Source of the DNA: Rhodosorus marinus CCMP1338
Taxonomy: Eukaryota; Plantae; Rhodophyta
Length of the DNA stretch: 64,000 bases
Direction of reading: 5' to 3'
Assembly (NCBI GenBank): GCA_029953675.1
Contig: JAMWBK010000004.1
Coordinates: 992,001-1,056,000 of the forward strand
This document shows positions 2,516 through 56,124 of this stretch, piece after piece. A program made the position numbers and the translations under genes. Below the pieces are notes generated by a model that was not told where the DNA came from, made no database searches, and worked only from the letters and a program-made list of their open reading frames with translations. Every line of letters starts with the position of its first letter. The stretch's first letter is position 1.

Positions 2516-3204
2516 ATGAGCAATCAGAAGTTCGAATCTATGTACAACGGTGCTGCTGCTGCTGAGTGCTGCTGCTAGTGACCAGTAGAAGAAAAACATC
2601 CATACTGACTTATGCAAAGAGTATTTTTTCCAAATGTTTCGGCGGACCTCAGTGCCCTTTCCGAGCAGCTTGCCAGGGGGAAAAAAACTGTGCGGGCTCT
2701 GCGCAGCAGCCCATCACGGGTGCATATTATTGAAATCTGGCCCGTTTTCCTTGTAGGCTTGTCCTTCAGAATATTCTGTGGTGCCTGCTTCTTTCTGAGA
2801 ACCTTGCTGATGCTCCCACCGTCTCCCTTTCACCCCGAACAGTCGATTCCAATCAGAAGTGCTAGCTCAAAACTCCAACCGACCATCAATGGTTTGGGAC
2901 AACCCCGTACTGTCCCGATCTGCTCTGGGGCTGATAATCTCGATACGGTTATAGGATATACAAGCAATTTATAAACGAAAATAACGCTTTGTACTGTTTA
3001 ATTTGTAAAACAACCCTAAATAGGGCAACCAATGATATCCACTAATAGTATACTTTGCTTTTTTTTAAAATTAGATTTAGTCCCAAAACATATCTCCAAA
3101 ACCATCCTTTGGCAATTAAGAAACGTCCACGTGTCCGGCCATGTTTACAAAAATCAATTTTCTCGAAAAAGCGAGGATTGCACTCAATTAGCTACCCTTA
3201 ATAA

Positions 3205-3215
3205 CCATTCGTTCG
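3205..3215 (+). mobile_element. Tail-only family A micro-insertion (11 bp) with 6-bp TSD
   Basis: TAATAA(3199-3204)-CCATTCGTTCG-TAATAA(3216-3221). Confidence 0.6.
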
Positions 3216-3244
3216 TAATAAGGTCCTGACCCGGCAGACGTACT

Positions 3245-3455: not shown

Positions 3456-4476
3456 GAGGCCCCCCACAGGCTCTTCTCAGTGTTTACTAACCTGAGATTT
3501 GGCTTGGGGGCGAATGATTACCGCCTTGATGTCGGTTGCATGCGATTTCCAGTCAGTTTTCTGTTTTTACCCTCGGGGTTTGTTTCTAGCATCCGATAAA
3601 AGCGTTTCTTCAAAAGCGTATCAGAACTCAACGCAAAATTCTAGAATATCGGATTCGGAAATAAGAATTTAAGCCGGCCGGGGAAGGGCGGCTGCCTCCC
3701 CGTTTCTAACTTGTTTGGTGACTACTAGTGAGGCCGATTGCTGAGTAGAGGCCGCGAGAATCATTGGTCTAACCAAACATGAACCTTTGCACGTATTTAT
3801 GAACATCCCTAAAGAATTCTGCGTGCCTACCCATTCCTAGTTACCTGGCGGGTCTTTAGCTCTCGGCCATCCACACCTTACCTTATCCTCAAGTTCCGCG
3901 ATGCTTGGAGCAGTTTACGATATTGATTTCCACTACCTGAACCGTTTTTCAACTTTTAAATGCAGGGTAGAGTCTGCAGGATCGATAATGAACTGGCTTG
4001 CAGTCTGTAATTTTGCTATTGGTCCCCATTGAGGATCTGTCAACGTGTGGGACAAAAGCTTGACATCGATGATCTGGTAATCAGGAGGCGAACTGGTTTC
4101 TTCTAGTGATATAAAATCTACGATGATTAAAACTTATAATGAGAACTCTCCGCAGAGTCATGAACTCGAGGCGCTGGAGCATTCTTCGTCCAAATTGGCT
4201 TTCGGTATCACCGAAGGACCAATAACCAAACTTCCTGGAGTCAAAACATTGGGTGCAGCAGCGCAACAGCTCTTCTATATTCACATAAACCACTAGCTTA
4301 AGGGACTTGACACGGATCAGACCCTCGTCACAACAAGAGACCCTTAAAGCACCGCCCCTCAATCCTCTTCGAAGCAGTCGATCCGCCACCTCTACGCAGA
4401 AAAATTCTACACCAATATTTTCTTTCATAAACCGAATAGTATATAGCGCCGATAAAAAATACCTCTATATATTTCA

Positions 4477-6513
4477 TATATACGAACGAACGAATGGTAT
4501 TTTTATTCTCCGCTTGGTCGTGGGGCTACCTATGACACCCTTGGCGCTTCCTCACACACGTTTGCGGCGCGCACAGGGGTACAACAGGGTGATCCCTTGT
4601 CCCCTTTCCTACATGCCTGTGGACTACAACTCGTCTTGCTTTGTCTTCGCTCCGAATTCCCGCAGGTTCGTACGGTTGCATACCACGACGACGTGTGCCT
4701 CCTGGGGCCCCCCGATACTCTAGCGCTCGCTTATGATCGTCTCCGCTCCTTGGCTTCGCGGGTTGACCTGGAGGTTAATCATCACAAATCGTTCTACTGG
4801 GGAGGTGTAGCTGCACAAGAGCAGCAGGTACCTGCGTCGTTCCAGGATATTTGGAGACCGGATGGTTTTGTCCACTTAGGCATCCCCTACGGGTCGCCGT
4901 CCTTCGTTGAAGGCGAGTTGCTGCAGCTCCTCGGTAAGCACAGACAGCTGGTTGCAGGGCTTCGACGGCTACCTCCGGGCTTTCTTCAGTGCTCGTTGTT
5001 GCTGTTTCGGTATTGTTGCAGTCAGCGGTTAACCTATTGGCTCAGCTCACTTCCAACTCATTGGGGCCGGTGGTTGGCCACTCGTGCGGATGCTGAAAGT
5101 TTCCGTGACCTGGGGTATTTTCTCGATGAAGAGCTGAGCGCTCTGCCGCGACCCACCTGTGATGTTGTGCGCGCCCAGGTAGGCCTCCCATTGCGATTGG
5201 GGGGACTGGGCCTCTGCAATCGTGTTGTGGTCCAACCTGCAGCCGCAGTAGGGGCCTGGGGAACCGCACTTCCCACTTTGAGCAGCTTGGGTATCTCGAA
5301 GTTCGGCAATTTGATGGCGAGCCTCTCGCGGGGTGTCTTGCTTCCCAGCGTACCGGAAAGCGCCCAAGACTTGTTTCTGGAGCTCCAAGCCGCCCTGAAT
5401 TCCTGTACTAGTCTCCCCGAAACCGTTCAACCCCGTCTTCCTGACTGGCGAGCTGTATTTGACCGCTCTCGAGGTTCCGCCCCGGGGATTCGTCCTGCGC
5501 CTGAATCTGTTCTAGGGGAGATTGACCCAGTGGTTGCCGCAGAAGAAGAAGTTCCAGTTGATCCTCCTGATGATTCCCAGCGCGCTGGGAGCCGAGCTCA
5601 AGCACGCACGGATGCGCTGCAAAATATCCTTTCTTGGGACTTGCACCGTGCTGCATATGGCCGACTCCTCGCGCAGATGGTCTCATCTTCTCGCGCTCGC
5701 GCCCGCCTACGTAGTCTTGGAGGGGTTCTTAGCTCTCAGTGGCTCATGACCGTACCAGCCTTTCCGCCACTCACACTGTCGGATTTCGAAGTGCGTACTT
5801 CACTGCGCTTATACCTCGGCTTACATCAGCCCCCTTGGCCGTACGAGATGGGTTCGTCGTGCCCTCTCTGCTCTCAGACTGAAGACAACGCAGATTTTGG
5901 CGCCCACCTGCTCGCTAGTTGCCCGGCGGTGAAAGGTGCTCGAACCCGCCGCCGTACACGGATCTTGAACCTGTTATACCGGGAACTTCGGCCTATAGTC
6001 CGGCAAGCCGGTCTGGAAATCGAACGTGAGAAACCTTTACCCGTCGCGGACTTTCAAAATGATGAACGCCGTGTAGCCGACCTGGTGATAACCTGTGACG
6101 ACAGCCGCCGTACCACATACGTTGATCTTGCTGTTCCTAAACCTCAAGCTAGTCGTTATCTCCCGGCTGCGGGGGAGCGCCGTGGCTCTGCCGCCGCCAG
6201 CATGAGACGCCGCAAAGAGATTAAATACGCAGGGGCTTTGTCTTCCCCTGGTGTTCGTGCTTCGGCACTAGCACATCGCTTGGTACCCCTGATCATTGAG
6301 TGCTTTGGGTTCATGGACTCTGTTGGTTCTCGCTGGCTTCGGGAGTTGTTCCGCGAACGCCCTGACCGTCTTCAATCGTTGTTTACCCGCTTAAGTTTCC
6401 TGCTGTGGCGCATGAACGCCGCTTTGATGTTGGAGGCGCGAGTACTTCGCCGCGCTTAGTCTTTTTTTCCCCTCGGGGTTTTTTTTTCAGCCTCCGATTA
6501 AACCATTCGTTCG
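4477..6513 (+). mobile_element. Family A CRE-like RLE non-LTR retrotransposon, 5'-truncated within RT, 11-bp TSD, inverted tail copy at the 5' junction
   Basis: TSD TATATATTTCA at 4466-4476 and 6514-6524. Tail (TTCG)2. T-rich 3'UTR with a CCCC-TC-GGGG hairpin. Confidence 0.9.
4504..6459 (+). CDS. Family A RT C-terminal half, CCHC knuckle and RLE (no true start; 5'-truncated)
   Basis: GVQQGDPLSP, YHDD, QVGLPLRLGGLG, CPLC-x11-H-x4-C, VADLVI..YVDLAVP..KEIKY, LVPLIIECFG. Confidence 0.9.
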   Translation, partial: YSPLGRGATYDTLGASSHTFAARTGVQQGDPLSPFLHACGLQLVLLCLRSEFPQVRTVAYHDDVCLLGPPDTLALAYDRLRSLASRVDLEVNHHKSFYWGGVAAQEQQVPASFQDIWRPDGFVHLGIPYGSPSFVEGELLQLLGKHRQLVAGLRRLPPGFLQCSLLLFRYCCSQRLTYWLSSLPTHWGRWLATRADAESFRDLGYFLDEELSALPRPTCDVVRAQVGLPLRLGGLGLCNRVVVQPAAAVGAWGTALPTLSSLGISKFGNLMASLSRGVLLPSVPESAQDLFLELQAALNSCTSLPETVQPRLPDWRAVFDRSRGSAPGIRPAPESVLGEIDPVVAAEEEVPVDPPDDSQRAGSRAQARTDALQNILSWDLHRAAYGRLLAQMVSSSRARARLRSLGGVLSSQWLMTVPAFPPLTLSDFEVRTSLRLYLGLHQPPWPYEMGSSCPLCSQTEDNADFGAHLLASCPAVKGARTRRRTRILNLLYRELRPIVRQAGLEIEREKPLPVADFQNDERRVADLVITCDDSRRTTYVDLAVPKPQASRYLPAAGERRGSAAASMRRRKEIKYAGALSSPGVRASALAHRLVPLIIECFGFMDSVGSRWLRELFRERPDRLQSLFTRLSFLLWRMNAALMLEARVLRRA

Positions 6514-7539
6514 TATATATTTCAAACGATATCAATTATTCATATTTTTAATTTGTCGGAGAATATTTTCTAATAGTTAAAGAAAAATATTCATATTATA
6601 TTGAATACATTTATTTGTTACATTAGTCCATAGCTAACTAATGCCGTGGCCTAATCATGTACTTTTAAGAGATGGACATATGGTTTTGTAGTAAAATAGG
6701 AAATAACATCTTGAAGGACTGATTTCGAGCGGTTGATTGGGCCTTAGCTGTACGGGCCGCTTTGAGGGGTTGGTAGCTTCTTCGGGCAATCGGTTATGGG
6801 ATATGCATGGTGATATGGGAAGATATCATGTCATGAAATTTACATCAGAGTGGGTTTACAGGATATTATCTGGGACACCCCGCCAGGGATGGATGTCCCG
6901 GACGGTTCCTTTTCTCAGTGGTGAAAACTGATTTCCCAAGTCAGTTTCGGCTTTGTTCTGATGAGCGATTCGCAAACGACAAACGAAGTACAGCGACGGG
7001 GAGGTTTTGACAGACTGTTTGAGTTCATAAAGATCGCGTGGACAAGATCTTTGGTGTGGTGAGCTGATCGAGCTGCTCTGGTAGGGCATGAGCAGGAGCT
7101 TTCTTCCAGGCGTAGGCAACATGAGGGCCCGGGTATTCGTTTGTGTTTGCACGGATGAAGATCGGGGGATGTGTCTCTCTGCGGATGTCTATTGTGAACT
7201 CTTTTTGCGGAGCCAAATGCTGATGAGACAGTTTGCGGCTCAAAGGGAACAAGCGGTGCTCTGTTTTGGAGGACGATCGAGGTTTGGAACACGTCGGGAT
7301 GTGAAAGACAACCGCCCGACGGGTCGGCAAATGTCTAGAGGTGGCTTTTACCGCGAAGAAAGGTGCACTTCGGGAAGTGTCTTTGGGGGGGACGAGGACT
7401 GCTCTCAAGTACCCGACGATGTCAGGTTGCTTAAGTCAGAGAAGCTGAACAGCCTCAAGACGGCGCTGCTCACTATCTGCGCTGCTGAGAGTCCGTCATC
7501 TGCCAACTGCTGAGACTCAAGACTCTGCAGGGTAGCTCG

Positions 7540-9570: not shown

Positions 9571-10240
9571 CCCACATGGACGTAGGATTTCTTCGAAAAT
9601 GAACTTCGCCACATTCTCCTTCATAGTTTCCGGCATTGCTCGCACGCAGACCATCGCGTCAACGAATCTACCGCCACGAAGATCCCTTGATTTCCGCTCG
9701 CGTGAGCCTTTCGAAACCTCCCGACAAAACCCGAATGGCACCGAGGGAAGAACGCTTGGCAGTAGTGGCGTAATCCGACGTATTGCTGCAATTCCGATGT
9801 CGAACATGGGAGGGGACGCGTAATTAGTTGCAATGAGTGGATGGATTTACTACTATAGCCTGAATCGCTGCGCAAGGCGTGGCAATGAATGTTCACTGCT
9901 TCTACATAAGACGCATCTTGTAAGAATAATACGGCACGAGTCTTGAGATTTGACAAGACGAGCGGGAATCTGTCAACCGTCCACTGGTCAGGTTCCGGAC
10001 GCGATGAGTGAGAAAGTACAATGCACAAGGCGAATATGATGGGGGATGACTCCTGCAGAATTTTGCCCCCGGATTTAGGCCACGTCTCCGGCCTATGTTT
10101 GTTCACTCTCGAGCTCATTAGTCTCGAGGAAGCCGACGGAAAGCCAGAATCTCCATCAGTCTACCCGAAATTCCCGAAATGCGTTGTTTCTGATATTGTC
10201 TTTGATTCTCCTAACCTTACCGAGCTCTGTCAGAGTCCTT
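9570..10240 (-). mobile_element. Ty3/gypsy integrase N-terminal remnant
   Basis: ELQQYVGLRHYCQA (HHCC-like) and CVRAMPETMKENVAKFIFEEIL (start of core); frameshifted. Confidence 0.4.
9837..9881 (-). mobile_element. Tail-only family B insertion (45 bp)
   Basis: Reverse complement is CACGCCTTGCGCAGCGATTCAGGCTATAGTAGTAAATCCATCCAC, flanked by GCAATGA at 9830-9836 and 9882-9888. Confidence 0.75.
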
Positions 10241-10445: not shown

Positions 10446-11843
10446 CTAGTTCCGGGCAACGAAAGTCGGGACTCGTTTTGGCTTTACGCCGATATTGGGC
10501 TGAGCGAAGCCCAGCTCGCATGCCGCTCTGTAGTTGACCCGTCTGAAGCTCGATTTCACTGTATACTGTTCTCCAAAGATGCCCTTGTACTTGAGCACGA
10601 GTCTGGCCGAATCAACTTCGACGTAATAGGGTCCGCCAGCGATCGGTTTGTACAGGTTGGAAATGGCAATTCCGTTGTTGTTAAAATACCAATCGAAGGT
10701 CTCCCCGTTGGGTTGGTTGGCGTACTCGATGTATCCTGTTCCGATCAACGCAGCTTGTGAGACAACCACTGTTCTGAACCTGAACTGGAAAGGGCATATC
10801 TTCTCCATATTCGTAGCTGGTGCCCAGAACTTGTTGATCCTGATTGTGTTCCTGTGTATCAGCGTGGGCATCCGGTAGCTTAGGCACAGGCTATCGTTGA
10901 ACTCGAAGAAGTCATGAAGTTGCAGGTTTCCAAGGATCCAGTTCTTTAGCACAGCTCCTATGGGATGGTCGTCCACGTCGTGCTCCTCAAGCTTCTGAAT
11001 GATCACGTGTTTGAGTTCGTCCATGATGAGCTCGTCGAGATCAACAGTAAGCAGATCCTGAACTGTTTTGCTCGTCGCATAGTCCATCATAATGCTCTCA
11101 ATTTCGTCCTTGATGAGCTTCTTGACGTCCACAAACTTTTCGATGATGTCCAGGAACGTATCCAGAATCCAAGAATCCAACGCCACCTCAAAGTCAACAA
11201 CGACATCCACCGGCACCAGTCTGACGGTCGGCGAGCTGTCCTTCGATTGAATGTCAAACTTGGCTTTGACATTGAGACCGTTGAAGTGGCCCTTTTTGTT
11301 TAGAAGGTTGATATTACACGGATTCTTTGTGATTTTGTGGTAGCATTCGACCTGGATCTCATTGCCTCTCTGTTCGAAATCAAGCTCCAACACAACGAGC
11401 ACACCACCTTGCGGGTTTTCCTCGAGATATGTTTTGATTCCCCAAGGTTGGGACACGATGTCCTTGATGTAGAGCCAGTAGCGCCTGTTGAGAATAGCCT
11501 TCTTGATGGGAGGAATGTCGAACGATATCGGATCGAGACCAGGGAGAACCACGTGAGAGGTCTGCTTTTCCCAGTTCTTCTTGGATTTGTTGTACGGCCC
11601 AAGGTTGTTGAGACTGATCTCTGATTGGCTGAGCAAACCGTTCAAAACGTCTATCACGGAGTCATTGGGCACGCAGAGGTAGTCATCGACGTATCCACCC
11701 TGTGTATTGGATCGGTGTAGTTTTCCAGGAGACAAAAAATCAACGAACTTGGTGTTGGCAAACTCAAGCGCACCACGGACCGAGCTTACAATCGCAACCA
11801 GGAGCACCACCACCACCGCTTTCGTGTATGCGTTTTTCTTCAT
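10446..11843 (-). CDS. Secreted protein, 465 aa, intronless; possible BPI/LBP (TULIP)-like domain plus a beta-rich C-terminal domain
   Basis: Start at MKKNAYTKAVVVVLLVAIVSSVRG (signal peptide) in a long uninterrupted ORF. Long beta strands followed by the amphipathic helix DSWILDTFLDIIEKFVDVKKLIKDEIESIM. The fold call is inference. Confidence 0.8.
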   Translation of the reverse strand: MKKNAYTKAVVVVLLVAIVSSVRGALEFANTKFVDFLSPGKLHRSNTQGGYVDDYLCVPNDSVIDVLNGLLSQSEISLNNLGPYNKSKKNWEKQTSHVVLPGLDPISFDIPPIKKAILNRRYWLYIKDIVSQPWGIKTYLEENPQGGVLVVLELDFEQRGNEIQVECYHKITKNPCNINLLNKKGHFNGLNVKAKFDIQSKDSSPTVRLVPVDVVVDFEVALDSWILDTFLDIIEKFVDVKKLIKDEIESIMMDYATSKTVQDLLTVDLDELIMDELKHVIIQKLEEHDVDDHPIGAVLKNWILGNLQLHDFFEFNDSLCLSYRMPTLIHRNTIRINKFWAPATNMEKICPFQFRFRTVVVSQAALIGTGYIEYANQPNGETFDWYFNNNGIAISNLYKPIAGGPYYVEVDSARLVLKYKGIFGEQYTVKSSFRRVNYRAACELGFAQPNIGVKPKRVPTFVARN

Positions 11844-13449
11844 CCTTGATGATATTCTCCTCTGTTGTTCTTGATGCCCTCGTCTATGAGGCCAGTCCCC
11901 CCACAACCAGCTCCGACTGGTACTTATAGTCGTCTTCTCAGCGTCAATAGAACGACCCAAGTTATGGCCAGAACGGTTGACGTATGACTGCCCTGAGAAC
12001 CGATCATCATAAAACTTTCCGAGAAGACCCTTAGGATCAAGGCAATGCCTATGACCGCGACAGTATTCAGCGCTCGATCAAGGCCGCATCGAGACCGAGA
12101 AGCAGACGCGCACAATAATTCCCTGTGCCAGGGCAATCTGCGGTATATTCTGATAGGTAACGGACCCTGGCAGCCAGATTGCCACGTACTATGGCGATAT
12201 TGTGAGCAGCAAAAGTCCCCCCTCCCAGACCAGAGGTCCCACTCGGTATACCCCGCACTCCAAAAATAGCTCATCGATGACAATATTCCTGATGAAATCC
12301 ATATCAATCTATGCGTATCCCAGCCCACTACATCGAACCGCCTGGGCAGCCATCTATCGATTACCCTCAAACCTTCCTTGAGCACAAAAGTGAACGAAAC
12401 TATGCCTGCGCCAGGCTTAGCACCACCCGATCCGCGGTAAGCAACCGTGACCAAAAAGCCAACCGTCTTATTATTTGCAAGCTGGCTGTCCACATGAATA
12501 TGAAAAAAAGGAAATATATAAAGACAAACTAAATTTTAATGAGATAACGAGTAGTATAAAAGTAGAACATCAGTGGAACGAAGTCTTTTATTTCGTAAAA
12601 ACAAAAGTTGTGTTTTTGAGTTTTAACCAATCATTAGTTTTAATAGATGATAAACAGTTTTAGAGTATTTTCATTCGTGTATAAGAAAAACTTAACGATC
12701 TTAACAGGCTAGTTGATATATGTCTTGTTCTATTATATGGAGCTCTTTCTAATTATAGAAGCTGTGGATAGCCCGTTCATTCAAACAGCCAATTAACAAT
12801 CTCTAATTGATTGGCTAGCATTGCGTCCCAACGAAATGGGACAAGCTCCGGGAAAGAGGCTTCTGAGTCGTCCAGAGTTGGGAAGCCCTAATAAACAATT
12901 CATTCAATTGCGGATGAAGGGCTTACAGGCAATTTCGGATTATCACTGACCTGTAGGTAGCTTGACCATCGCCATGGACGGTTTACGTTTGGTACGCCTT
13001 CTTTCTCCATGCGCCACCACGGACAACCGCGCTGTGTGGTCTTTTTCGGTTGTCTATTGCGCTCTGATGGAGGCGAAGGCACAAAGTCAGCTAGTTTAAC
13101 GTTCTATAGTAGCCAGGTCAAGGCCGTCCTAGTCGCCACAGCAGAGCGACTGGTTGACCGAGCAGGTGTCACAGCATATCTCCGACAAATGCTGACAAGC
13201 CTTAGGTACAGGTATACACCCTTACCCGTTGGCGACTGGCTTAATAGCTTTCCAGTATTACGAAAATATCTGTCGTCCATATCTCCGGTTCCTTCCAGTA
13301 CGGTCTTTTACAGGCAATCACCGCCGCCAACTGAAATGAATTGGTTTAACTGGTGCACAGGATCACAGCAGGATTAACCCAGAAACCCTCCATCACTGGT
13401 CAATCAGCTTCATACCACTGCTCTCAACGCATAAATTGTACTGTTGTAC

Positions 13450-13620: not shown

Positions 13621-13650
13621 GAATTTGTAACCTCTCAAATTCTCTATTCT

Positions 13651-13728
13651 GGGCTTTACCAGCATAGCCTGAAACGCTACGCAAGGCGTGAAAAGAAACT
13701 AAGAACTAGGGAGGGAAGCGTGCAAACC
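13651..13728 (-). mobile_element. Short family B 3'-end insertion (78 bp) with 7-bp TSD
   Basis: TSD CTATTCT at 13644-13650 and 13729-13735; carries the stop, 3' stem-loop and tail GGTAAAGCCC. Confidence 0.8.
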
Positions 13729-14589
13729 CTATTCTAACTATGAATACATCCTGGCAGGTGTCAGAAGTAGGTAATTAAAGAATCTTTTCACTTTCCATAA
13801 GTCAGCAGATGTGCAGCAAACCCGAAGGTTGCGAGGGTCAACGTACCTGGATTTACTACAACCATAGAACACGACGATGAGGAAGACTTGCAACGGAAGA
13901 GTGCAAGGGATTGCGCAGCTGGGTTTGCTACGACCGTGGAAACGTCTGGGGGAGAACCCCGACTACTGAAATGAACTGGGCAGGGAGAAAAAGAAAAGGA
14001 GCCATGTCTGCGATTATTATTGAATCAGGGGACCAAATAAGACACAATTAAAGAACCGCCATCGCGCGCGAGCAGGCAATAATATTCCCTGCGATAGAAG
14101 GGCGAAAACGCCTGCGTATTTCCTCGTAATCTATTTCTCATAGCTGTGCTTCCTCGCAGTTCTCAGTTCCTTGTAGAATTTCAATTGCTTCATAGAGGGG
14201 GGAAGAGGTAAGCCTGCCCGCCTGCGGGGCGTCGTCAATCTGAGTATTTCAACCAGGACTTTGCCTGGCCCAAGTCATGGACTAAAAAGAATGGTTCAAC
14301 AGTCGTGTGGATACTAGATCGACAATAGGAAACCGGCTGAAACCCGACACTGGCAGGTTGGGTCCCTTTATGAGGTACGCAGAGAGGTTGCAGAGAGCGC
14401 GCGCCCTGAACTAAGGCACCATTACAGCACCAGAGAGTGGGATTCACACAGTTGAGCACCAAATCATTAACCGTAATACCGAGCAACCCCACCGCTATCT
14501 AAGAATCCGACGACATCCATGGCTAAGCATGTAAGCAGATGGGTCAGGTGAGACTGCAAAGCCACAGCGGGGCCAGGTGCCTCCGATTG

Positions 14590-14695
14590 CACTGATCTCC
14601 TTTTGCTTCCGCAGACTACGAAAATGACGAACGACGAGTGGCTGACCTCGTGCTCACCTGTTAAGATAGCCACCGTACGACGCGAGTTGTAGGTT
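14590..14695 (+). mobile_element. Old family A RLE fragment, left part, split by the full-length family B insertion; right part is 19536-19870
   Basis: ADYENDERRVADLVLTC*DSHRTT continues after the insertion as VDLAVSNPDASRYLPAAGERRG. Confidence 0.75.
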
Positions 14696-17600
14696 CAACC
14701 TGTTTGAGTAGTCTGGGGTTGGGTATCGAGGCTATGCTAGTTGTCGAGGATTGGGGTTTTGTTTCTTTTTCGGTCGCGAGCGTGTTCGTTTACGGGAAGC
14801 GCTTCCTCTGGTACGCCTTCCCCTCGATTTTCCGCGGGGCGTCGTTTGCATTTGCAACTACTTCTGTCTTCCGGGTGGGTGAGTTGCGGGGCCTTTCCTA
14901 TTTGGGTTGGGTTTGGTCGATTATTCTCTCGGTGCGGTTTCATATTGGTGGTGCAACGTTTCCTTGGCGGATTCCCTCAGGATGGTAGGGATATCTCCGC
15001 ACTCGACGGAGCCTCCTCCCAAGGAGGCACTGCCAGGTGGGGGACTCCGTGTTCGCCTCAGCTGCGGCACGTTTTCTTCCGAGGTTGACTTGGAAGGCGC
15101 TTCTGGCACCCAGGCGCGTTCACTTATCTCCGCTGTCACCAGCCTGATCACGGCTGCGAGTGATCGTGGAGTGCTCCCTCAGCTCACCCAGAAGCTAGGT
15201 GGGCTGGAATCGGGATTGCTGGCCAGGTCAAATTCAAATTCGGACGAGAATTTGAATTGCCCCAGAGTGGCAGCGTTGGCTGAAGGCAGTCAACATCCGG
15301 TCAATCAACATGAACCTGTCCCGGGACAGGCGAGGGCTGTTGCTTCTGCGCGGGACAGTACGACGTTGGGGAGCGGCAGGCCGGGCCAAAACGCGCTTCA
15401 GCGCTCGGGGACTCGAGGCAATGGTGGTGGTGACTGTGCGGCAACCGGTGTGGAGGAGACTGCAGCTGTGGACTTCCCTCTCTTGGACCAGCCCTCAGGT
15501 GGTCACCAGCTCCCGGCTACTTCGGGGGCACGTGGTGGCCGCAAGGGGGCGCTTCGTACGCATCAGTCTTGCGGAAGGGCACCACTGCCACACGTACGGC
15601 GGCTATGCTCCGTTTCATACCATCTCGCGAGCCTCAGGATGGACCTGTGGAGACCACTCTCCAATTTCTGTGGGTGCGAAATGTCCGGCCCCAGACTACA
15701 CGAGGACAGGTTCCGTCTATGCGAGACTTCCGGGACACTTTTGCGGAATCGTTAGGGTGCAGCAGGGGTGATTTCTTCTTCGCAAACTATGAGGGCCGCG
15801 ATGTGCTGTTTTTGGTCTCCGCAACCGCCGCCAAGTACCTGGAGGCCTTGCTGGCGAAGCCTACCGAGCAGTGGCCTGAGAGCGCCCGGTGGCTGCGCTG
15901 CAACCCGCAGGTGGTTTTGCACTTCGATTTTGACCGTTTCTCGGGCAATTTCCTGTCTCCGGGAGAAACGGCAGGGCTCTCTGAGCATGAGAGCAGCGTG
16001 AAGGCGGCAGCGATCCATTGGCTACGGATTCAGCGCCTTGAGAGGATCTTGTTGGCGCGGTTCCGGTCGGGCCCTCGTCACCTGCGCATGGCGGTTTCCA
16101 GTTTCTTCGATCTGGAGAGGCGACTTGTGCTGACTTCGCGCTACAAGACAGAGCTGCAGCGGTTGGGGATTTTGGAGGGCTCTGCTTCCAGCACTACTTC
16201 CAGCGAGAGTGGTGAGGCAGGGGAGCAGACTGAGGGCATGGCGGTGGAGGACGCCCAGGTTACTTTGCTGAAGCCCGCGGGATCCGTTCCGCGAGCCTCG
16301 CGGAGTGGGAGGCTCACGACTTTGGTGCGGATAGGAGGTAAGAGAGCGAGGACCGACTCCCCGGGTCTAAGGGGAGAAGCACGATTAGCGCTCAGGCACG
16401 GCTGCGAGGTCGCAGCCTATGGATCTACAGTCTTATGTCCTGAAGGAGGGCGGAGACTGGGGCATTTGGCGTACGCGTTTTCGGAGTTGGCTCCGGCGGT
16501 GGATTTCTTTGGAAGGAGGCTCGCTTCCCTCCGTGGGGGCATTCCCCCAGTCGTCCTTCCTCGTGGAGACCTTCTAGTAGCTGGAACCATTCTCGATTTC
16601 ATCTTCACGAGCCTGGCTCGCAACATTCGGGACACAGTCATTTGGGTTTTTCTGGGGTCATGCCGCGCCTGATTCTGGCCCCCATTCACACATCGGAGCG
16701 CAGATGGCGAGTACGAGACCGACTGGCCCTGTTCTTGAAGGGAGACTTCGAAGTACTACAGCGCAGCTATTTGGCGTCGTCAGCACCATCCGCCCGTCGG
16801 ACTCGGCATGGCACAGTGTCGCCCGTGCCAGCTCGAGTACAGAAATTGGTAGCAGTGGGCGATTTAAGTCGAGCGGCGCGGGTTTTGGAGGGCCAGGCGC
16901 CTGTCCTCCCCTACGATGATAGTCTCGCCCAGACGGTGTCGTCTTTGTTCCCTGAGTCCGACGTGGATTTGTCCCCTGAATTCGAGGTATTCTTGGACCG
17001 TCCGGAGTTGGCCAGGTTTCGCATCGATCTGACGCTCAGTGAGTCTGACCTGGAGGATTTGCTTCGTACCTCGCGTCGGGGACGCTGTCCTGGACCCTCC
17101 GGACTAAGAACAGAGCTATTGCAGGCCCTGAGCCAGCCTGGCCAGAGCGCGCTTCTGAGGATCCTTAACAAGTTGTTCCAGGGCGTATCGGGTGCGTCCG
17201 CGCCATGGGAACATCTCCGGCAGGCACAGCTTTGCTTGCTCACGAAACCTGACCACCAGCCGGCCCACCCGCGTCTCCGGCCGATCGGGATGGTGGAGAG
17301 CCTACGGAAGTTAGCCGGGAGGTGGCTATGCCAGCGCCTTCGCCAGCGCGTCACAGCTTTTATGGCGCCCTTGCAAGTAGGGGTGGGATTTTCTGGGGGT
17401 TGCGAACTGATCACCCATGGGATCGAGCTAGAACGCGCCAGTAGGCCGGAGTGGGGAGTCTTGGTGGTTGATTTCCGGAACGCATTCAACAGCGTGTCGC
17501 GGACGCATGCGCTAGAGGTGCTCCGACGTGTGTTTCCGGAGGCGTGGCCGTTTCTATCGGGTATTTACGGAGGGGAGAGCCTCCCCTACTTGACAACGGA

Positions 17601-19535
17601 GGGCACTGTTTTTCAAGCACATACTGGCGTCCAACAAGGCGACCCTTGCGGACCTCTTCTTCATGCCTGTGCCCTACAGCTTGTACTTTTACGTCTTTCG
17701 ACTGAGGTCTCGGATCTTCGAATCTGCGCGTACCACGATGACGTAACATTGCTGGGCACCCCTGACACCCTGGCTAGGGGACTGACCGCGATCGAAGCGA
17801 TTGCACGTCGCGTCGGTTTGACTGTGGAAACAGAAAAATGTCGCTTTCTCCCCCCGAGGGACGTGTCGCTGAACTCTCTGCCACCCACTCTGCGACTAAT
17901 CAGCGAACGTGAAGGGTTCGAACACCACGGCGTCGGATTGGGGACTGACAACTTTGTCCAAGCATCCTGCGAGCGAGTTTTGGCACGGCACAAGCAACTC
18001 ACCGACGCCATTGAGCACCTACCCGACAGCATGCTGCAATCGGCCTGCTTGCTTTCCCGCTTTTGTGCCGGTCCCAGACTCAACTACTGGTTGCGCAGCC
18101 TGCCTCCAGCTTGGGGCTCGTGGATCGCGGCTAAAGCCGACGAAATGACCCTGCAACACTGGGGAACGCTCTTGGATGAGCCCCTCGATCTTGAAGCTGC
18201 TCCCGACAGGGACTTTATTCGTGCACAGATCGCTCTACCGTTGCGATTAGGGGATTCGGCGTCGCAGACCGTGGGCTGGTATGCTCGCCAGCGGCGGTTG
18301 CCTCCTGGGCTACCGCGCTGCGAACGTTGGTGACCTTCCGGATGCGAAGTGCCTGCCTCTTGGCTCGAGCTTTGACCAACGAGGATCCAGTGACCCTGCC
18401 GCCCCCGCTTTTGACAATTTATGATGGTCTTCAACACGCGTTCAGGAGGTGCAACGCCGTGCCGGACGCAAATCGGTCCCGCTTTCGTTCCTGGAGGGAG
18501 CTGTTATGGGGACGAGCTGAAGCGATTGAGGATTCTCCCCTCGACCGAGTTCTTGCCGATGACGGAGAGGCTAGCCCCGGGTCCCCTGTTGCAGACTACC
18601 CGGGTTTGAGCCGATTGTGGAGCTCCCGCACTGATGTGATTCAACATAGCCTCACCTGGGGCCAACACAGTGCCGCTCACACAGTCATGCTCAATTCTCC
18701 TCTCACGCCGCCTACCACTGCCGCTCGTCTCCGCGGCATGGGAGGCCACCTCTCGCACTTGTGGTTAACCACTCTACCGTCGTCATTGAGTCATCGTCTC
18801 GATGCTTTCCAGTTCCGTTCTGCCGCACGCATCTATCTCGGTTTGCCACAGGCTCCGTGGCACTCTAATCGGCCGTCTTTCTGTCAGGGATGTGAGAGCC
18901 GGATTGACGCTTGTGGCTACCACTTCCTGGGTTCCTGCGGACTGTTGCGAGGTCTCCGTACGAGGCGTCACACTCGCCTCAAGTACATCCTCAGCGAATC
19001 TTTGACTCGGATAGGGCATACGGTTGAGGTTGAGTCGGAACTGCCCAGATCCATCTCGGACTCTGCACCGCCCCGTTGTATAGCCGATCTCCTCGTCTCC
19101 GACGCTGCTGCCAGACGCTCAACATATGTGGACCTTGCGATTACCTGCCCCGTGGCCAGCGCCCACCTCACCGCAGCCGCCCGCCGCCGGGGGGCCGCGG
19201 CTTCAGCCCTTCGAAGAGTTAAGGAACGACGGTATGCTGAGAGCATGGCCAGTCTGCCTTGCGCTGAGGGTCGCTCTCACCGGTTCCAGCCATTCATTGT
19301 GCAAAGCTTTGGTCACGTCGATAAGTCGGGTTTAGAGTGGTTGCGGAAATGTTTTGCTGAGCATCCTACTGAATATTTGGCGCTCTTGAGGCGTTTAAGT
19401 GTCTCCCTTTGGCGATATTCCAGCGACATGCTTTCCGAGGCGCGCCATCGGCGCCTGGGGTTGCATGCTTCCCTCCCTAGTTATTAGTTCATCTTCACGC
19501 CTTGCGTAGCGCTTCAGGCTATGCTAGTAAAGTCC
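14696..19535 (+). mobile_element. Family B CRE-like RLE non-LTR retrotransposon, apparently full length (4.84 kb), 11-bp TSD
   Basis: TSD AGTTGTAGGTT at 14685-14695 and 19536-19546. The region from 14750 matches the start of the copy at 60745. 3' end is CTAGTAAAGTCC. Confidence 0.92.
14982..19487 (+). CDS. Family B polyprotein, about 1500 aa when three -1 frameshifts are bridged: RRM-like region, RT, CCHC, RLE
   Basis: Frames 14907, 15569, 16642 and 18327 join via 1-bp-short G runs at about 15545, 16655 and 18250; the 56-60 kb copy has one more G at each. Motifs RCPGPSGL, LRPIG, DFRNAFN, GVQQGDP, YHDD, CQGC..H..SC, RH, IADL..YVD..KERRY. Confidence 0.85.
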
Positions 19536-19870
19536 AGTTGTAGGTTGATCTTGCTGTTTCTAATCCTGACGCTAGTCGCTATTTGCCGGCTGCGGGAGAG
19601 CGCCGTGGATTTGCCGCTGCAAGTATGAAACGCCGCAAACAAGTGAAACATGCGGAGGCTTTGCCTTCCCCAGGCATTTGTACTTGGGCTCTAGCTCATC
19701 ACTTGGTAGCTCTGATCATTGAGTGCTCTGGGTCTATGGATTCTGTTGGTTCTCGTTGGCTTCGTGAGTTGTTCCGAGAACGCCCTGACCGTCTGTACTC
19801 GTTGTTTACGCGTGTAAGTTTCTTTTTGTGGCGTATGAAGGATGTTATTTTTTGATGTTGGAGGCGCGCG
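19536..19870 (+). mobile_element. Old family A RLE fragment, right part
   Basis: ASRYLPAAGERRGFAAASMKRRKQVKH..LVALIIECSGSMDSVGSRWLRELFRERPDRL. Confidence 0.8.
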
Positions 19871-20823
19871 GGAAATCGTCAGGGCCAATCGCCGAGATAA
19901 TTTCCGACGGGCAAATGTTCTTCCTTCGAGATGCAAATCGGCCCTCCCGCGTAATCTAAGAGGCAAACGTGAGAGGATCGAAACTGCACACAACGGAAAA
20001 CTCATATACCGCGCATGCGACAACGTGAGGGCGTGAGCGCCGGCGAATACGCCACGGAATTCAAGATAACGCTGGAGCGCTCGCCCCCAAACCTGGGCTA
20101 CCAGCCGCGCTCGAACAACGAAAAGCTCGTATCAAAGTTAAAACCATATAGTCACGTATGTGTTGGGATCTTGGACTTACCCTCGGGATAGTTAGAGGAG
20201 GTAGGATCGGATCGACTGTTGGTTTATTTGTACAGTCGTCGACCTTGACTTGGGTTAATGTTCGTGGCAATTAGTAATAGCCGTTATTAGATTAGAATCC
20301 CGCTGAAGACTACATTAGAGTTGCTTGGAGGCGAGACATATACGTTTAGAATCTGAGCCGACTTAGAAGAATTGGAGCAAACCCTGCGGGACCCATATAA
20401 ACCAATTTCGTTCGCATACTAGTAAGGGATCTTCCAAGGTAAGTAGTAAATTGTCATATACTCGAAAGGCATCGTATGCTCATACACCTTATGTTCCAAT
20501 ATGTTCAGGAGATCTGGCCTGTGGGAGTCTTTCGGAAAATGGAGGGCAAAAATTTGAACAAACCCTGGTGTTTGAATGTCCTATATCCTCTTGATTATCC
20601 ATTTATTCCGAACCAACCACACTTGATGGCTTCTAGGATCACCATATATACAATTCCAGTCTCCGAGATCCTTGGACTTACGGAAAACGTTCATGCATGT
20701 GCATGCGTGCAAAATCCCTAATCCAACCCTACCTTGATCCCTAATACTCTATTAGCTGACAAAATACGGGTCACTACTGGTGACTACAGTGGCTCTGTCA
20801 TAGTAACCCTGTTCGTCACTTAG

Positions 20824-20837
20824 CCATTCGTTCGTTC
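20824..20837 (+). mobile_element. Tail-only family A micro-insertion with a degenerate 9-bp TSD
   Basis: GTCACTTAG-CCATTCGTTCGTTC-ATCACTAAG (7/9 match). Confidence 0.45.
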
Positions 20838-20929
20838 ATCACTAAGTCCGACTTCTATAGAAACTCCCCGACAAAGCCCTGTCAAAATAAGGATCTTGAT
20901 TGGTTGTTGGCCTTCTCGATTGACCAATG

Positions 20930-22064
20930 GGAGTCTCACAGGTTCCAGCCTTTCATTGTTGGAAACCTTTGAGCATCTGGAAAATTCAAGCTTGGAATCG
21001 CTTGGTAAGCGTTTCACCGAACATCCTGAAAAATATCTGGTGCTCCTCCGCTGTTTGAGTATCGCATTCTGGCGGTATTCTAGCAACATGCTCGCCGAGG
21101 CGCCACCGTTGCTTGGGCTTACATGCTCTTCTTCCTAGCCCCTAGTTTCCTTTTAGGGTTTGCGTGGCGCGTCAGGCTATCCTAGTAAAACCACGCTTGT
21201 GGCTACCACTTCCTGGGTTCCTGCGGACTGTTGCGAGGTCTCCGTACGAGGCGTCACACTCGCCTCAAGTACATCCTCAGCGAATTTTTGACTCGGATAG
21301 GGCATACGGTTGAGGTTGAGTCGGAACTGCCCAGATCAATCTCGGACTCTGCACCGCCCCGTTGTATAGCCGATCTCCTCGTCTCTGACGCTGCTGCCAG
21401 ACGCTCAACATATGTGGACCTTGCGATTACCTGCCCCGTGGCCAGCGCCCACCTCACCGCAGCCGCCCGCCGCCGGGGGGCCGCGGCTTCAGCCCTTCGA
21501 AGAGTTAAGGAACGACGGTATGCTGAGAGCATGGCCAGTCTGCCTTGCGCTGAGGGTCGCTCTCACCGGTTCCAGCCATTCATTGTGCAAAGCTTTGGTC
21601 ACGTCGATAAGTCGGGTTTAGAGTGGTTGCGGAAATGTTTTGCTGAGCATCCTACTGAATACTTGGCGCTCTTGAGGCGTTTAAGTGTCTCCCTTTGGCG
21701 ATATTCCAGCGACATGCTTTCCGAGGCGCGCCATCGGCGCCTGGGGTTGCATACTTCCCTCCCTAGTTATTAGTTCATCTTCACGCCTTGCGTAGCGCTT
21801 AAGGCTATGCTAGTAAAGTCCAGTAAAACCACATGTGGATAAGTCGAGTTTAGAGTGGTTGCGGAAATATCTCGCTGAGCATCCTACTGAGTACTTGGTG
21901 CTTTTACGGCGTTTGAGTGTCGCCCTGTGGCGATATTCTAGCAGCATGCTTGCTGAGGCGCGCCTTCGGCGCCTGGGTTTGCACGCTTCCCTCCCTAGTT
22001 CTTAGTTCGTTTTCACGCCTTGCGTAGCGCTTCAGGCTATGCTAGTAAAGCCCAGTAAAACCAC
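20930..22064 (+). mobile_element. Head-to-tail stack of three 5'-truncated family B copies (about 20930-21183, 21195-21821, 21833-22053), each followed by AGTAAAACCAC
   Basis: The 11-mer is at 21184-21194, 21822-21832 and 22054-22064. The middle copy is near-identical to 18909-19535. Confidence 0.88.
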
Positions 22065-22151: not shown

Positions 22152-22905
22152 GTGGTTTTACTGGTTTTTACTGATGCGTTACGGCAAGGCGTAAAAGGAA
22201 ACCTGGCGCTAGAATAGCGCCAGAGAGCAACACTTAAACGGAGGAGGAGCACCAGACATTCTTCAGGATGTTCGGTAAAACATTTACGCAGCCGCTCCAA
22301 GCTAGACTTTTGCAGATGCCCAATGCTTTCCACAATGAAAGGCTGGAACCTGTGGGACCGGCCCTCTTCCCGGGGAAAACTGGCAATGCTCTCAGCGTAC
22401 CGTCGATCCTTCACGCGGCGAAGTACAGAAGCTGCTGCCTCCCCTGCAGAGAGCGGCAGAAGGGAGATAGGTACCGGACACGGGGCAAGTGACAGCGAGC
22501 TCCACATATGCTGAGCGTTTGACGGCTGCGTCCGATACCAGGAGATCTGCGATGCAACGAGGAGAGGTGGTTGCGGAGGGTGTACCAGGCAGTGCCGATT
22601 CCACCTCGACCGTGTAGCCAACTCCTGTCAAGTGCTCGCTCAGGATATATTTCAGAGACGAGTGTCTCTTGGTGCGATGACCTCGCAGCAGTCCACACGA
22701 GCCCAGAAAATGGTACCACATCAGTCGATACGGCTAGCACAACCTTGGCAGACGGAAGGGCGATTGGAAGACCAAGCGGCCCGTGGCAAACCCAGGTAGA
22801 TGTGTGGCGCGGTCCGGAACTGGAGGCGTTCAGGCGTTGGCCCGGTGATGAGGGCAGAGTAGTTAGCCATGAGTGGGATAGATGAGCTCCCATGCCCCCT
22901 TAGAC
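22152..22905 (-). mobile_element. Diverged family B 3' fragment, tail-to-tail with the stack
   Basis: HFLGSCGLLRGHRTKRH, CIADLLVSD, FQPFIVESIG; tail ends in AGTAAAACCAC (22152-22162 on the minus strand). Confidence 0.8.
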
Positions 22906-22926
22906 GAGCCCTCGATAGGTGCAGCG

Positions 22927-23739: not shown

Positions 23740-24135
23740 AAGCGCACTCCTAAACATGTTGACGTTAGCTTACAGGATGCGCAGGAACAGGAACAATGGA
23801 ATAGATTTGACTTCAGGCATGTGGCAACGGAGAGCCAGACAGTGGATGTATTAACAAAGTCTCTGAGCAGTGTGCCGCTCGAGAAACACAGAGGACTTAC
23901 AAGCATTAGAAGTGATTCGTAGTTTGTCAGCTGCAAGAGCAATGAGGATTAAGCCTGAGTAGGATTAGGGTTTTTGTACGTTTGCATCTGCACGAACGTA
24001 AGTCCCAAGATCTCGGAGGCTGTAGGAGCATACACGTTGCTTCAAGAGGTCGGCAAAGTGCGTTTGGTACTACGAGACGGTTGATGATGTGACATTAAAT
24101 GAGACTCATAGACCTCGAATTTCCACCATCTACAA
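23740..24135 (+). mobile_element. Copia family 2 remnant: RNase H end fused to the LTR interior
   Basis: PKHVDV..RHVATESQTVDVLTKSL aligns with 51690-51840 and joins LTR sequence (52107 onward) at a shared ACAGAG microhomology; PPT and LTR start are deleted. Confidence 0.7.
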
Positions 24136-26420: not shown

Positions 26421-26722
26421 CATTAATTTATAGCGCATCTGCTAACAGAAAATTGTTGAGAGTTCCTTAATTAAACAAATTTATTCCTATATCACATATC
26501 AAAAATAAAATAAAAACTGTTTCTATTTCAATTATACCATAGATAGAACGTATTTAGTTGATAAAGGAACGGTATCATATTTTTATTTTGAATATATTTA
26601 TTATTATGCTTTCGAAAGGCTTGCGCCAGGATGCGCGGTCCGAAGAGAGTACTAAGGCAACTTCTGGGGGTCTGGAGCCTGGGGAGGGAGCAGGGCTGGA
26701 AAGGGGGAGGGGGTGGGGGAAG

Positions 26723-31811: not shown

Positions 31812-32330
31812 ATGACTGAATGATTTTTTTAATCGGAGACTGAAAGGAAAACCCCGGGAAAGAAAAGACTACAAGCGGCGAAGATCGGGTGCCACCAACC
31901 TCAAAGCAGCGTTCACACGCCACAACAACAAATTTAAACGGGTAAACAACGAGGACAGGCTGTCAGGGAGTTCGCGGAACATTTCCCGAAGCCAACGAGA
32001 ACCAACGGGATGCATAAACCCAAAGCACTCGATGATCAGAGGTACCAGGCGATGAGCTAGAGCCGAAGCACGAATGCCTGGGAAATAAATAGCCGCTGCA
32101 TATTTGACCTGTTTCCGGCGTCCCACCTCATACTTGCGGCGGCAAATCCACGGCGCGCTCTCCCGCAGCCGGCGAATAACGACTAGCCTGAGGATTAGGA
32201 ACTGCAAGATCAACGTACAACGTACGTCGTACGGCAGCTATCGTCACAAGTTACCACGTGGTCAGACATCTTCGTTCGTCATCTTGGAAGTCTGCGACTG
32301 GCAGGCGTTTCTCACGTTCAATTTGAAGAC
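31812..32330 (-). mobile_element. Family A 3' fragment
   Basis: LVPLIIECFGFMHPVGSRWLREMFRE; 3'UTR CTCCGATTAAA with a TTCA-type tail abutting AGTAAAACCA (31799-31808). Confidence 0.8.
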
Positions 32331-34139: not shown

Positions 34140-35900
34140 AATGCGCACCCTCCAGATTTCAGGTCTAGTCGACGACAACGTGCGGGACACGATGTGGCAG
34201 GCAGTGGTCTCCGGACGACTGACGGTATCCTCCAGCAACGGCAACTTGTGGTAGAGTATTCTCACGATATTGTTTCTCAGCTCCGCTCCACGTTTTCCCG
34301 CGGAAGACTCTCCGTGGGTCTCGTCTTTGACGCGGAGATGGAGGCGTCCCAACCAGCCTGCCAGGCTGGTTGGGACGTGTGAGGGTGAACAGTTGGTGGT
34401 TACCTCGGATGCGGTGCGAGAGGTGGCCCAGTCTGCCCTCCGAAGGGTCGTTCTCCTGGGCACTCGGGGTTGCGTGTGGAGTATCGAACGAATGGTTTAA
34501 TCGGAGGCTGAAACAAAAAACCCCGAGGGGAAAAAAAGACTAAGTGCGGCGAAGAACTCGCGCCTCCAACATCAAAGCGGCATTCATGCGCCACAGCAGG
34601 AAACTTAAGCGGGTAAACAACGATTGAAGACGGTCAGGGCGTTCGCGGAACAACTCCCGAAGCCAGCGAGAACCAACAGAGTCCATGAACCCAAAGCACT
34701 CAATGATCACGGGTACCAAGCGATGTGCTAGTGCCGAAGCACGAACACCAGGGGAAGACAAAGCCCCTGCGTATTTGATCTCTTTGCGGCATCTCATACT
34801 GGCGGCGGCAGATCCACGGCGCTCCCCCGCAGCCGGGAGATAACGACTAGCTTGAGGATTAGGAACAGCAAGATCAACGTATGTGGTACGGGGGCTGTCG
34901 TCACAGGTGATCACCAGGTCGGCTACACGGCGTTCATCATTTTGAAAGTCCGCGACGGGTAAAGTTTTCTCACGTTCGATTTCCAGACGGGCTTGCCGGA
35001 CTATAGGCCGAAGTTCCCGGTATAACAGGTTCAAGATCCGTGTATGGCGGCGGGTTCGGGCACCTTTCACCGCCAGTATCACCGCCTTTTGGATGAGGAC
35101 AGTATGAAAGCGACAACGCAGTGCTGGAGGGATCGTCAATGGCGATCCTTTTTGTGATCGCATATGCTTTTTACTGGGGCGAACGCAGCTATATTTTGCT
35201 CTCCAAGTCGAGTCATACTGCTTCGATTCCTACCATTCGCCCTATTGGCATGGTGGAAATGGTCCGGAAACTGGCCGCCAGTTGGCCGGTCAAGGTTTTG
35301 TTCCCCAAAATCCTGCTGTTTCTTTAGACACACGCAGTTGAGCGTGGGTTATCGCGGTGGTTGCTAGCTGTTGTTACCCCTTTCTTGCTCGGAAATGACC
35401 TACTTCCCGGATTACAGGTAATTATACCTAGACTTCGGGAAGGAATTTAATCGTCTCTCCTGCCGGCCATCATGCATGTGGTACATCAGGTCCCTGTAGC
35501 TTTTCCATTTTTTTGTCGTGTGTACTCTTTGCTGGGCCATGGGCCGATCTATGAAATCCATGGCCCCTCCTCGCACTCCTTTGGGCGCGGGCTGGGGTTC
35601 AACAGGGTGACCGCTTGCCCCGCTCTTGCACGCCCGTCGAAATCAGGTCGTTTTGCTAGCCTGCATTCCGAGTTCCGCACAGTGAGATTTGCCACGATGT
35701 CTGCCTCCTGCTCCCCCCTTCCCCCCGGATGCTCTCACGGCGGCGTACGATCGTCTTCTCACAATGACACTACCGAACATTCCGGACTAGTTCGGAGACT
35801 GGCAAAAACCACCACCACCAGGTATGGGCAGGCCACAAAAGGTACACAAGCGGTAAGAAGGTACCCCGTAGCCTTTATCCCAGAGTAACGTAACCCCAGT
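34140..35900 (+). mobile_element. Degraded CRE-like RT region interrupted by a family A copy
   Basis: KGRSPGHSGLRVEYHRLL (reads through when the insert is removed), IRPIGMVEMVRKLA, VGYRGGC, LDFGKEFN, GVQQGD, CHDVCLL. Confidence 0.7.
34486..35074 (-). mobile_element. Young family A 3' fragment with 6-bp TSD
   Basis: AGTATC at 34480-34485 and 35075-35080; near-identical to 5925-6513. Confidence 0.88.
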
Positions 35901-56035: not shown

Positions 56036-56124
56036 ACCTATTGGGATTGTAGAAACAAAGTGTTTTGTATGTGAAGGTGTATGGATCCTGACTTGTCTGC
56101 CATAAATACGATCGCCTCCTATGT

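Follow-up and report, generated by a model that had tools for sequence, protein, structure and literature searches.

Two related lineages of retrotransposons that lack long terminal repeats (non-LTR) and carry a restriction-like endonuclease (RLE), here called families A and B, are present in the red alga Rhodosorus marinus. They are described from a 64,000-nucleotide stretch of strain CCMP1338 (assembly GCA_029953675.1, contig JAMWBK010000004.1, positions 992,001 to 1,056,000; "the window" below). These elements have no fixed host target, yet there is a clear preference for sites that begin with AGT, and most of all for the tails that older copies have left. We think it probable that they are RLE-bearing long interspersed nuclear elements (LINEs) with a nick site matched to their own 3′ tail, which home to their own older tails through target-primed reverse transcription (TPRT); this is the best explanation of the junctions described below. 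The window was examined together with five 21.6-kb loci of the same assembly that lie around sulfatase paralogues (L121 to L125, a further 108 kb), 172 kb in all, and the family A and B copies in those loci are 97–99% identical in nucleotide sequence to the window copies. Positions in the window are collected in Table 1.

The family B tail and its junction with the target

A list of every B-type 3′ end within the 172 kb shows that the family B tail consists of one to four tandem copies of a 10-nt unit, AGTAAAGTCC. Young copies end in GCT(AGTAAAGTCC)1-2, with a single unit in copies that stand alone and two units in three L122 copies; the L124 tail has up to four, namely one unit and after it three of an older GCCC type. 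Variants of the unit include GCCC, (A)ATCC (as TCC-ATCC and GTCC-AATCC) and ACCAC(C), and an older B subfamily has the tail AGTAAAACCAC(C). The junction ...GTCC|A... is the boundary between one tail unit and the would-be next. An earlier reading made from the sequence alone (the sequence-only reading) had quoted a series of 3′ junctions and target-site duplications (TSDs), every one of which is present in the sequence, and had drawn from them a CC|A junction rule. As a free-standing rule this is not borne out, and CC|A is instead the phase of the tandem tail unit; with the junction so corrected, an ordinary-looking target, AGTAAAACCAC, turns out to be an older tail. Seven TSDs were verified in the window, AGTTGTAGGTT (11 bp), ACATAGGAGG (10 bp), AGAATAG (7 bp), ACTCATTGC/ATTCATTGC (9 bp), AGTAAAACCAC (11 bp), ATACT (5 bp) and TAATAA (6 bp).

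The full-length copy B1 illustrates such an insertion. It contains an ORF1-like region (ORF, open reading frame) followed by reverse transcriptase (RT), CCHC and RLE regions, frameshifted in this copy, and its 3′ end reads ...GCTAGTAAAGTCC (...CAGGCTATGCTAGTAAAGTCC), with the tail unit at 19526–19535. The 11-mer AGTTGTAGGTT that flanks it occurs exactly twice in the window, where 0.03 copies are expected by chance and none of 100 shuffled sequences gave two. The target was the RLE-coding region of a family-A-like element, whose residues 479–509 (family A numbering) are found by tblastn at 14596–14688 and residues 509–611 at 19544–19852; the empty site aligns to 11 relatives.

At the 5′ side of B1, the first 33 nt are unique within the 172 kb, and positions 34–46 of the element (AGGCTATGCTAGT) are identical to the 3′-end motif. 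Three near-full-length family B copies start at positions corresponding to B1 47–57, with tail-like sequence before each (window 14696–14755 and 60705–60760; L124 3356–3409), and the true family B 5′ end may therefore lie near position 47 (TGTCGAGG...).

In L122, a B-type tail read on the minus strand (about 1260–1303) breaks off at AGT and gives way to GGTGGTTTTACT, an inverted unit of the older type (the reverse complement of AGTAAAACCACC), after which the tail continues from AGT; a tail alone may have been inserted here in inverse orientation.

Base preference at the target

The B-type events are those in which a TSD is visible on both sides, a first ten and three added later, one candidate having been rejected, for a total of 13; an ambiguous long-TSD candidate at L121 ~15015 was left out. 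Six are in the window (AGTTGTAGGTT; AGTAAAACCAC twice; ACATAGGAGG; AGAATAG; ACTCATTGC), one is in L121 (AGTTGTGCTCAT), two are in L122 (AGTAAAACCATC; AGTTGACAGTCT) and four are in L123 (AGTAAAAAGC twice; AGTGAAGTC(C); ACATTCATT), the second AGTAAAAAGC event there flanking 19 nt of inserted sequence, probably but not certainly a B 3′ end. The duplications are of variable length, as had been proposed, at 7–12 bp in family B and 5–15 bp in family A.

A opens all 13 B-type duplications, AG opens 10 of them and AGT 9, in sequence where A makes up 24.4% of the bases and AGT has a frequency of 1.3%. The leading A is not explained by background composition: by composition alone the probability of 13 leading As is 0.244^13, or ~1e-8, and for the first ten events binomial probabilities are 7.6e-7 (A), 1e-8 (AG) and 9e-12 (AGT). 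The five non-tail targets among those ten all start with A (P = 8.7e-4). From the 3′ junction alone this A could be assigned to either side, and at L123 ~6314 the boundary between tail and TSD can be moved one base either way. There is next to no chance, however, that the A after CC is part of the element (tail ...CCA), which would make the TSDs one base shorter and remove the bias: in 13 of 13 events A, usually as AG or AGT, also stands in the upstream TSD copy beside unrelated DNA, so it belongs to the target and not to the element alone.

AGT also opens the tail unit. Seven of the 13 B-type targets are not own-type tails, and these are all different, but three of them open with AGTTG (AGTTGTAGGTT, AGTTGTGCTCAT and AGTTGACAGTCT), which makes the preference roughly Y|AGTWR. 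The sequence-only reading had allowed for 1–3 nt of microhomology between tail and target; the first target bases do match the tail's next bases, although the preference spans about five or more bases (AGTWR).

Insertion into older tails

The other six of the 13 B-type events fall exactly where a unit begins in an older B-type tail (AGTAAAACCAC twice, AGTAAAACCATC, AGTAAAAAGC twice and AGTGAAGTC), and a family A tail was the target of one more B-type event. Unit-like starts account for 0.04% of positions, and the chance of such a share of tail targets is ~1e-17 (calculated on 14 events, before one was dropped). In the window, the 11-mer AGTAAAACCAC is the end of the older fragment B0, whose B-like coding sequence and 3′ untranslated region (UTR), about 270 bp together, run straight into it; a spliced-leader or telomere origin for AGTAAAACCAC was considered and rejected on the same ground. 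The site at 21184 was used twice at one base, by B2 (99% identical to B1) and by B3 (88%), with the same 11-mer after each, and since these two copies differ in age they represent two separate events, that of B3 being the earlier. In L122, three copies form an array inside an older copy's tail, with AGTAAAACCATC on both flanks, and in L123 one older tail was used twice, with the TSD AGTAAAAAGC. Elsewhere in L123 the tail of copy 2 is AGTAAAGTCC+AGTGAAGTCC, and that of copy 1, directly upstream, is AGTGAAGTC; an A-to-G variant common to the two copies indicates that the unit is duplicated target, and that copy 2 entered the tail of copy 1 at a unit start.

These sites bear on the earlier view that the targets lack any fixed sequence and are unrelated apart from a leading A or AG. 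The absence of a fixed target stands insofar as the targets are diverse and none is a host multicopy gene: no Rfam family (rRNA and ribozymes included) and no tRNA was found in the window, so there is no RNA-gene target there, and the seven non-tail targets all differ. It needs qualifying for the preference for AGT and for older tails, and the targets can no longer be called unrelated when 6 of 13 are unit starts of older tails and 3 of the 7 others begin AGTTG. An essentially random choice of target, aided by 1–3 nt of microhomology and with no preferred sequence, is accordingly most improbable. It would account for the variable TSD length and for seven non-tail targets that are alike only in their first bases, but not for the share of insertions at older-tail unit starts, the double use of one window site and one L123 site, or the three occurrences of AGTTG.

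Head-to-tail arrays of 5′-truncated copies are found in the window, L122, L123 and L124. Homing to tails would explain the transposon islands of head-to-tail fragments in the Rhodosorus genome.

A proposed mechanism and its alternatives

The arrangement of the junctions suggests the following scheme. The family B transcript would end in one or more 10-nt units, AGUAAAGUCC, and that of family A in CCA(UUCG/UUCA)n. The endonuclease would nick the bottom strand at a loosely defined site (top strand Y|AGTWR), and the released 3′ end (...ACT-3′) would be complementary to AGU, with which each tail unit opens, so that the tail may pair with the target during priming. Synthesis of cDNA would then begin in unit phase and yield junctions of the form ...GTCC|AGT..., and a top-strand cut 7–12 bp downstream would give rise to the TSD. 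Each new copy would supply a fresh AGTAAA... unit, the best target of all, and later insertions would fall at the unit starts of older tails. Sites would then be used again and show the same TSD, tails would come to hold several units, tails alone would be found as mini-insertions, and copies would pile up in head-to-tail arrays. Putative elements of this scheme are the RNA's true 3′ end, the pairing at priming and the shares of protein and RNA in site choice.

Several observations weigh against it. The B-type sample is small and not genome-wide, 13 events from 172 kb of transposon-rich DNA beside sulfatase genes. Positions 4 and 5 of AGTTG are unable to pair with AGUAAA, so the protein (or another factor) contributes to the preference. 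In the older ACCAC-type subfamily the bias is weaker, with about 5 of 12 flanks starting with A. RNAalifold, applied to 23 diverged 3′ ends, predicted only three pairs and showed no covariation; no fold is supported, and conservation of the 3′ UTR is confined to its sequence. The empty site of B1, reconstructed with one TSD kept, has 7 extra nt (CGAGTTG) that are absent in 10 of the 11 A-like copies, and the 11-bp TSD, although the simplest reading, depends on a 7-nt insertion in that particular A-like copy beforehand; one relative (32136–32285) has a 7-nt duplication (TACGTTG twice) in the same place. Finally, the three copies of the L122 array are each 99% identical to B1 and share a single 12-bp TSD with none between them, which fits equally well with this array having been made in one TPRT event by an RT that, on reaching the 5′ end of one RNA, jumped to the 3′ end of another.

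The R2 reverse transcriptase is well known to jump between templates in this way, and there are 2–3 nt microhomologies at the internal junctions of the L122 array. As the origin of the arrays it is nevertheless rather unlikely. The two copies of the window array are of different age (99% and 88%), with an identical 11-mer flanking each one, and the unit that follows copy 2's own unit in L123 carries the rare variant of copy 1, as a TSD would. The two-unit L122 tails have another explanation as well: with TSDs of 10–12 bp and a unit of 10 nt, a TSD made inside a tail resembles one extra unit.

It is conceivable, though we are doubtful, that site choice is purely protein-determined, with the RLE or some other part of ORF1 or ORF2 reading about five bases (Y|AGTWR) and with no RNA pairing. 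R2 nicking is protein-determined, AGTTG opens three independent TSDs, one of them from a different subfamily (L122 ~2275), and a pyrimidine precedes the nick in 6 of 7 reconstructed sites. On the other hand, an N-terminal zinc finger or Myb module was not detected in these proteins and the junction is always in tail-unit phase. Furthermore, family A, which has a different tail (TTCG/TTCA), has different TSD starts, including the own-tail-like CATTCA..., as RNA guidance predicts. Protein recognition and RNA pairing are not mutually exclusive, and the homing scheme above has room for both. The stronger proposition, that target choice is largely RNA-guided, with the 10-nt tail unit pairing to the nicked target and homing to any copy of the element's own tail, we regard as unlikely. 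Were it true, the elements would build their own "safe-harbour" arrays, an altered tail unit would retarget an RLE LINE without a dedicated DNA-binding domain, and the R2 systems now used to insert transgenes would have in these families a relative that is programmable by nature.

Protein anatomy and element class

The proteins of these elements contain a LINE-type RT (RVT_1 matches at E = 7.6e-16 and 1.8e-15); the best matches among solved structures are R2 proteins (E = 1e-14), and L1 ORF2 proteins also match. Downstream of the RT are a CCHC knuckle and a PD-(D/E)xK-like endonuclease. This stretch aligns weakly with the C-terminal endonuclease region of R2 (stand-alone E-value 1.4), and in it C40, C43, H53, C58, D123 and K153 are invariant across six sequences that are 23–41% identical, with the first (A/P)D motif of the RLE present in most of the six. 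With RT, CCHC and D..D..K all found, the proposal that these are RLE-bearing non-LTR retrotransposons was correct. No apurinic/apyrimidinic endonuclease (APE) and no Pfam domain beyond the RT was found in the element proteins, an N-terminal zinc finger or Myb domain gave no Pfam match even at E<=1, and a regular-expression scan of all frames found the C-terminal CCHC only. The lack of N-terminal DNA-binding modules fits the loose specificity of families A and B. There are no LTRs or terminal inverted repeats, 5′ truncation is frequent and TSDs are present; copies range in size from 11 nt to 4,840 bp and all have the 3′ end in common.

The family B copy at L123 16473–21173 (minus strand) is nearly intact, with a 502-aa ORF1, a TAG codon and a 1,033-aa ORF2 in one frame. 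The single TAG could be a site of stop-codon readthrough or one inactivating mutation, and the 502-aa ORF1 has no Pfam match. The family A protein is a related RT-CCHC-RLE protein, 38% identical to that of family B, and the nearest database proteins are unnamed and 32–39% identical. This red-algal lineage is previously undescribed and, with copies 97–99% alike and one nearly intact, probably recently or still active. A search of metagenome contigs with a 16-nt core of the 3′ UTR returned chance matches only, with no wider similarity, and exact look-ups for the protein products of three window ORFs gave no match.

Comparison with other retrotransposons

LINEs with an RLE are usually site-specific. 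The order RT, CCHC knuckle and PD..D..K is shared with R2, as is TPRT with variable 5′ junctions, whereas families A and B are unlike R2 in having no N-terminal zinc finger or Myb domain and no fixed 28S rRNA site but diverse targets, and family B in having an upstream ORF1-like region. They therefore offer a natural contrast to R2 on the gain and loss of target specificity in RLE LINEs. The targets are other transposons and unique sequence, not the spliced-leader genes of CRE/SLACS/CZAR and NeSL-1, and no telomere-like repeat array of the MoTeR kind was seen in the flanks read at TSD-defined insertions.

In Dong/R4 ((TAA)n), Togen ((TG)n) and some HERO elements the tail repeat equals the target repeat and copies pile up into arrays. 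The target of Dong/R4 and Togen is a pre-existing microsatellite, whereas family B brings its own 10-nt unit and makes about half of its insertions elsewhere; the target is the element's own tail repeat in 6 of 13 B-type and at least 2 of 9 A-type events, the remainder having only AGT or AGTWR. Microsatellite targets are listed for repeat-targeting RLE LINEs, and the HERO clade "contains many non-specific retrotransposons", with some microsatellite-specific families (PMC4640811). The novelty that the sequence-only reading had implied for relaxed RLE LINEs therefore falls away, as non-specific ones had already been described in that clade (PMC4640811). HERO is the closest in behaviour, most of its members being non-specific RLE LINEs and some inserting into simple repeats, a comparison made by description; it is described from animals, and families A and B are from a red alga.

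Reverse transcription of the eel LINE UnaL2 begins on its (UGUAA)n tail and involves slippage along the template (PMC1636434), and "stringent" L2-type elements of this kind resemble families A and B in having a conserved 3′ UTR with short tandem tail repeats, whose number is altered by slippage (PMC1636434). What sets them apart is their APE endonuclease and their structured 3′ stem-loop; in A and B a conserved fold was not found. L1 and Alu follow the logic proposed here, in that the TTTT|A nick site gives a primer that matches the poly(A) tail, and older tails become hot spots; these differ from A and B in their APE endonuclease, homopolymer tail and relaxed RNA recognition. The LINE-like Zepp of Chlorella inserts into the tails of earlier copies and forms nested tandem clusters, with a poly(A) tail and another type of enzyme, and is mentioned as a lead only. 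There is no new principle here: LINEs with an RLE but no site specificity, LINEs with repeat tails and LINEs that target tails were each known before.

Family A

The family A tail is CCA followed by a 4-nt unit, as (TTCG)2-4 or (TTCA)2-3. A full-length copy with the TSD ACCGTATTCGCTACC lies at L121 3974–8722. The family A TSDs CATTCATTCAAT and CATTCAGGGC lie within sequence that resembles the element's own tail, and such targets account for at least 2 of the 9 A-type events. The two tail-only inserts in the window appear to be products of TPRT aborted directly after its start.

The 5′ junction of A1 (4477–4497) reads TATATA-CGAACGAACGAATGG, six TSD bases and an inverted copy (4483–4497) of the element's own 3′ tail (CCATTCGTTCGTTCG). 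This is the product that would be expected of "twin priming", in which the top-strand nick serves as primer on a second tail.

Table 1. Family A and B copies and associated features of the window (TSD, target-site duplication)
Feature	Position	Strand	Details
Tail-only family A insert	3199..3221	+	11 nt CCATTCGTTCG at 3205-3215; TAATAA on both sides
A1, 5′-truncated RLE element	4466..6524	+	element 4477-6513; tail CCA(TTCG)2; 11-bp TSD TATATATTTCA at 4466-4476 and 6514-6524
B9, 43-bp 3′ fragment	9830..9892	-	fragment 9839-9881; tail AGTAAATCCATCC; 9-bp TSD ACTCATTGC / ATTCATTGC, one mismatch
B6, 78-bp 3′ fragment	13644..13735	-	fragment 13651-13728; tail GGTAAAGCCC; 7-bp TSD AGAATAG
Upstream TSD copy of B1	14685..14695	+	11 bp, AGTTGTAGGTT; exact repeat
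B1, full-length family B RLE non-LTR retrotransposon	14696..19535	+	4,840 bp; RVT_1 E = 7.6e-16; boundaries read
Downstream TSD copy of B1	19536..19546	+	AGTTGTAGGTT; exact repeat
3′ part of family-A-like element split by B1	19547..19868	+	5′ part at ~14596-14684
Tail-only family A insert	20816..20846	+	14 nt CCATTCGTTCGTTC at 20824-20837; flanks TCACTTAG / TCACTAAG
B0, older diverged B-like 3′ fragment	20925..21194	+	tail AGTAAAACCAC at 21184-21194; tblastn to B residues 876-947
B2, young 5′-truncated copy	21195..21821	+	99% to B1; TSD AGTAAAACCAC at 21184-21194 and 21822-21832
B3, older 5′-truncated copy	21833..22053	+	88% to B1; TSD copy 22054-22064
B4, diverged B-like copy	22152..22909	-	tail CAGTAAAAACC then unit AGTAAAACCACC; 22152-22162 is AGTAAAACCAC
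A6, family A 3′ fragment	34480..35079	-	fragment 34485-35074; 5-bp TSD ATACT at 34480-34484 and 35075-35079
B5, 4,570 bp, truncated at position 243	56115..60704	-	element 56125-60694; tail GTCCAATCC (AGTAAAGTCC+AATCC); 10-bp TSD ACATAGGAGG at 56115-56124 and 60695-60704
B7, B-like copy	61856..62184	-	two tail units, AAATAAAACCACC then AGTAAAACCGCC

Other family B sequences and the host context

In the window, B4, B7 and one family A copy are likewise trailed by AGTAAAACC... units; their 5′ TSDs were not found. A 5′-only piece of family B (element positions 51–728) lies at 60741–61575, separated by 36 bp from the 5′ end of B5, which runs the other way, and holds an internal inverted duplication in which 61244–61399 is the reverse of element positions 407–562.

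Two B-type 3′ ends, at 42990–43022 and 43152–43196, are 172 bp apart and are followed by similar flanks (77–95%). An apparent 22-bp TSD around a 150-bp insert at 43047–43196 was rejected and left out of the event counts, as the 5′ part of the insert matches the downstream flank (77%). Likewise, the region 42985–43310 was rejected as a long TSD or a short interspersed nuclear element; it is an old tandem duplication of ~172 bp that comprises the tail plus its flank.

Between the transposon clusters of the window lie intron-free host genes (10446–11960, 26558–27664, 44893–46578 and 47501–48355). Two of them encode short-chain dehydrogenases, one encodes a sulfatase that has a PKD domain, and one is a 504-aa ORF for which Pfam gave no match. 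The window sulfatase (561 aa) matches proteins of Rhodosorus marinus at 83% and 78% identity, and the sulfatase paralogues of this alga are likewise in transposon-rich surroundings, near contig ends. A repeat family that is unrelated to A or B is present in three copies of 63–85% identity at 23942–24083, 49731–49877 and 52163–52313 of the window.

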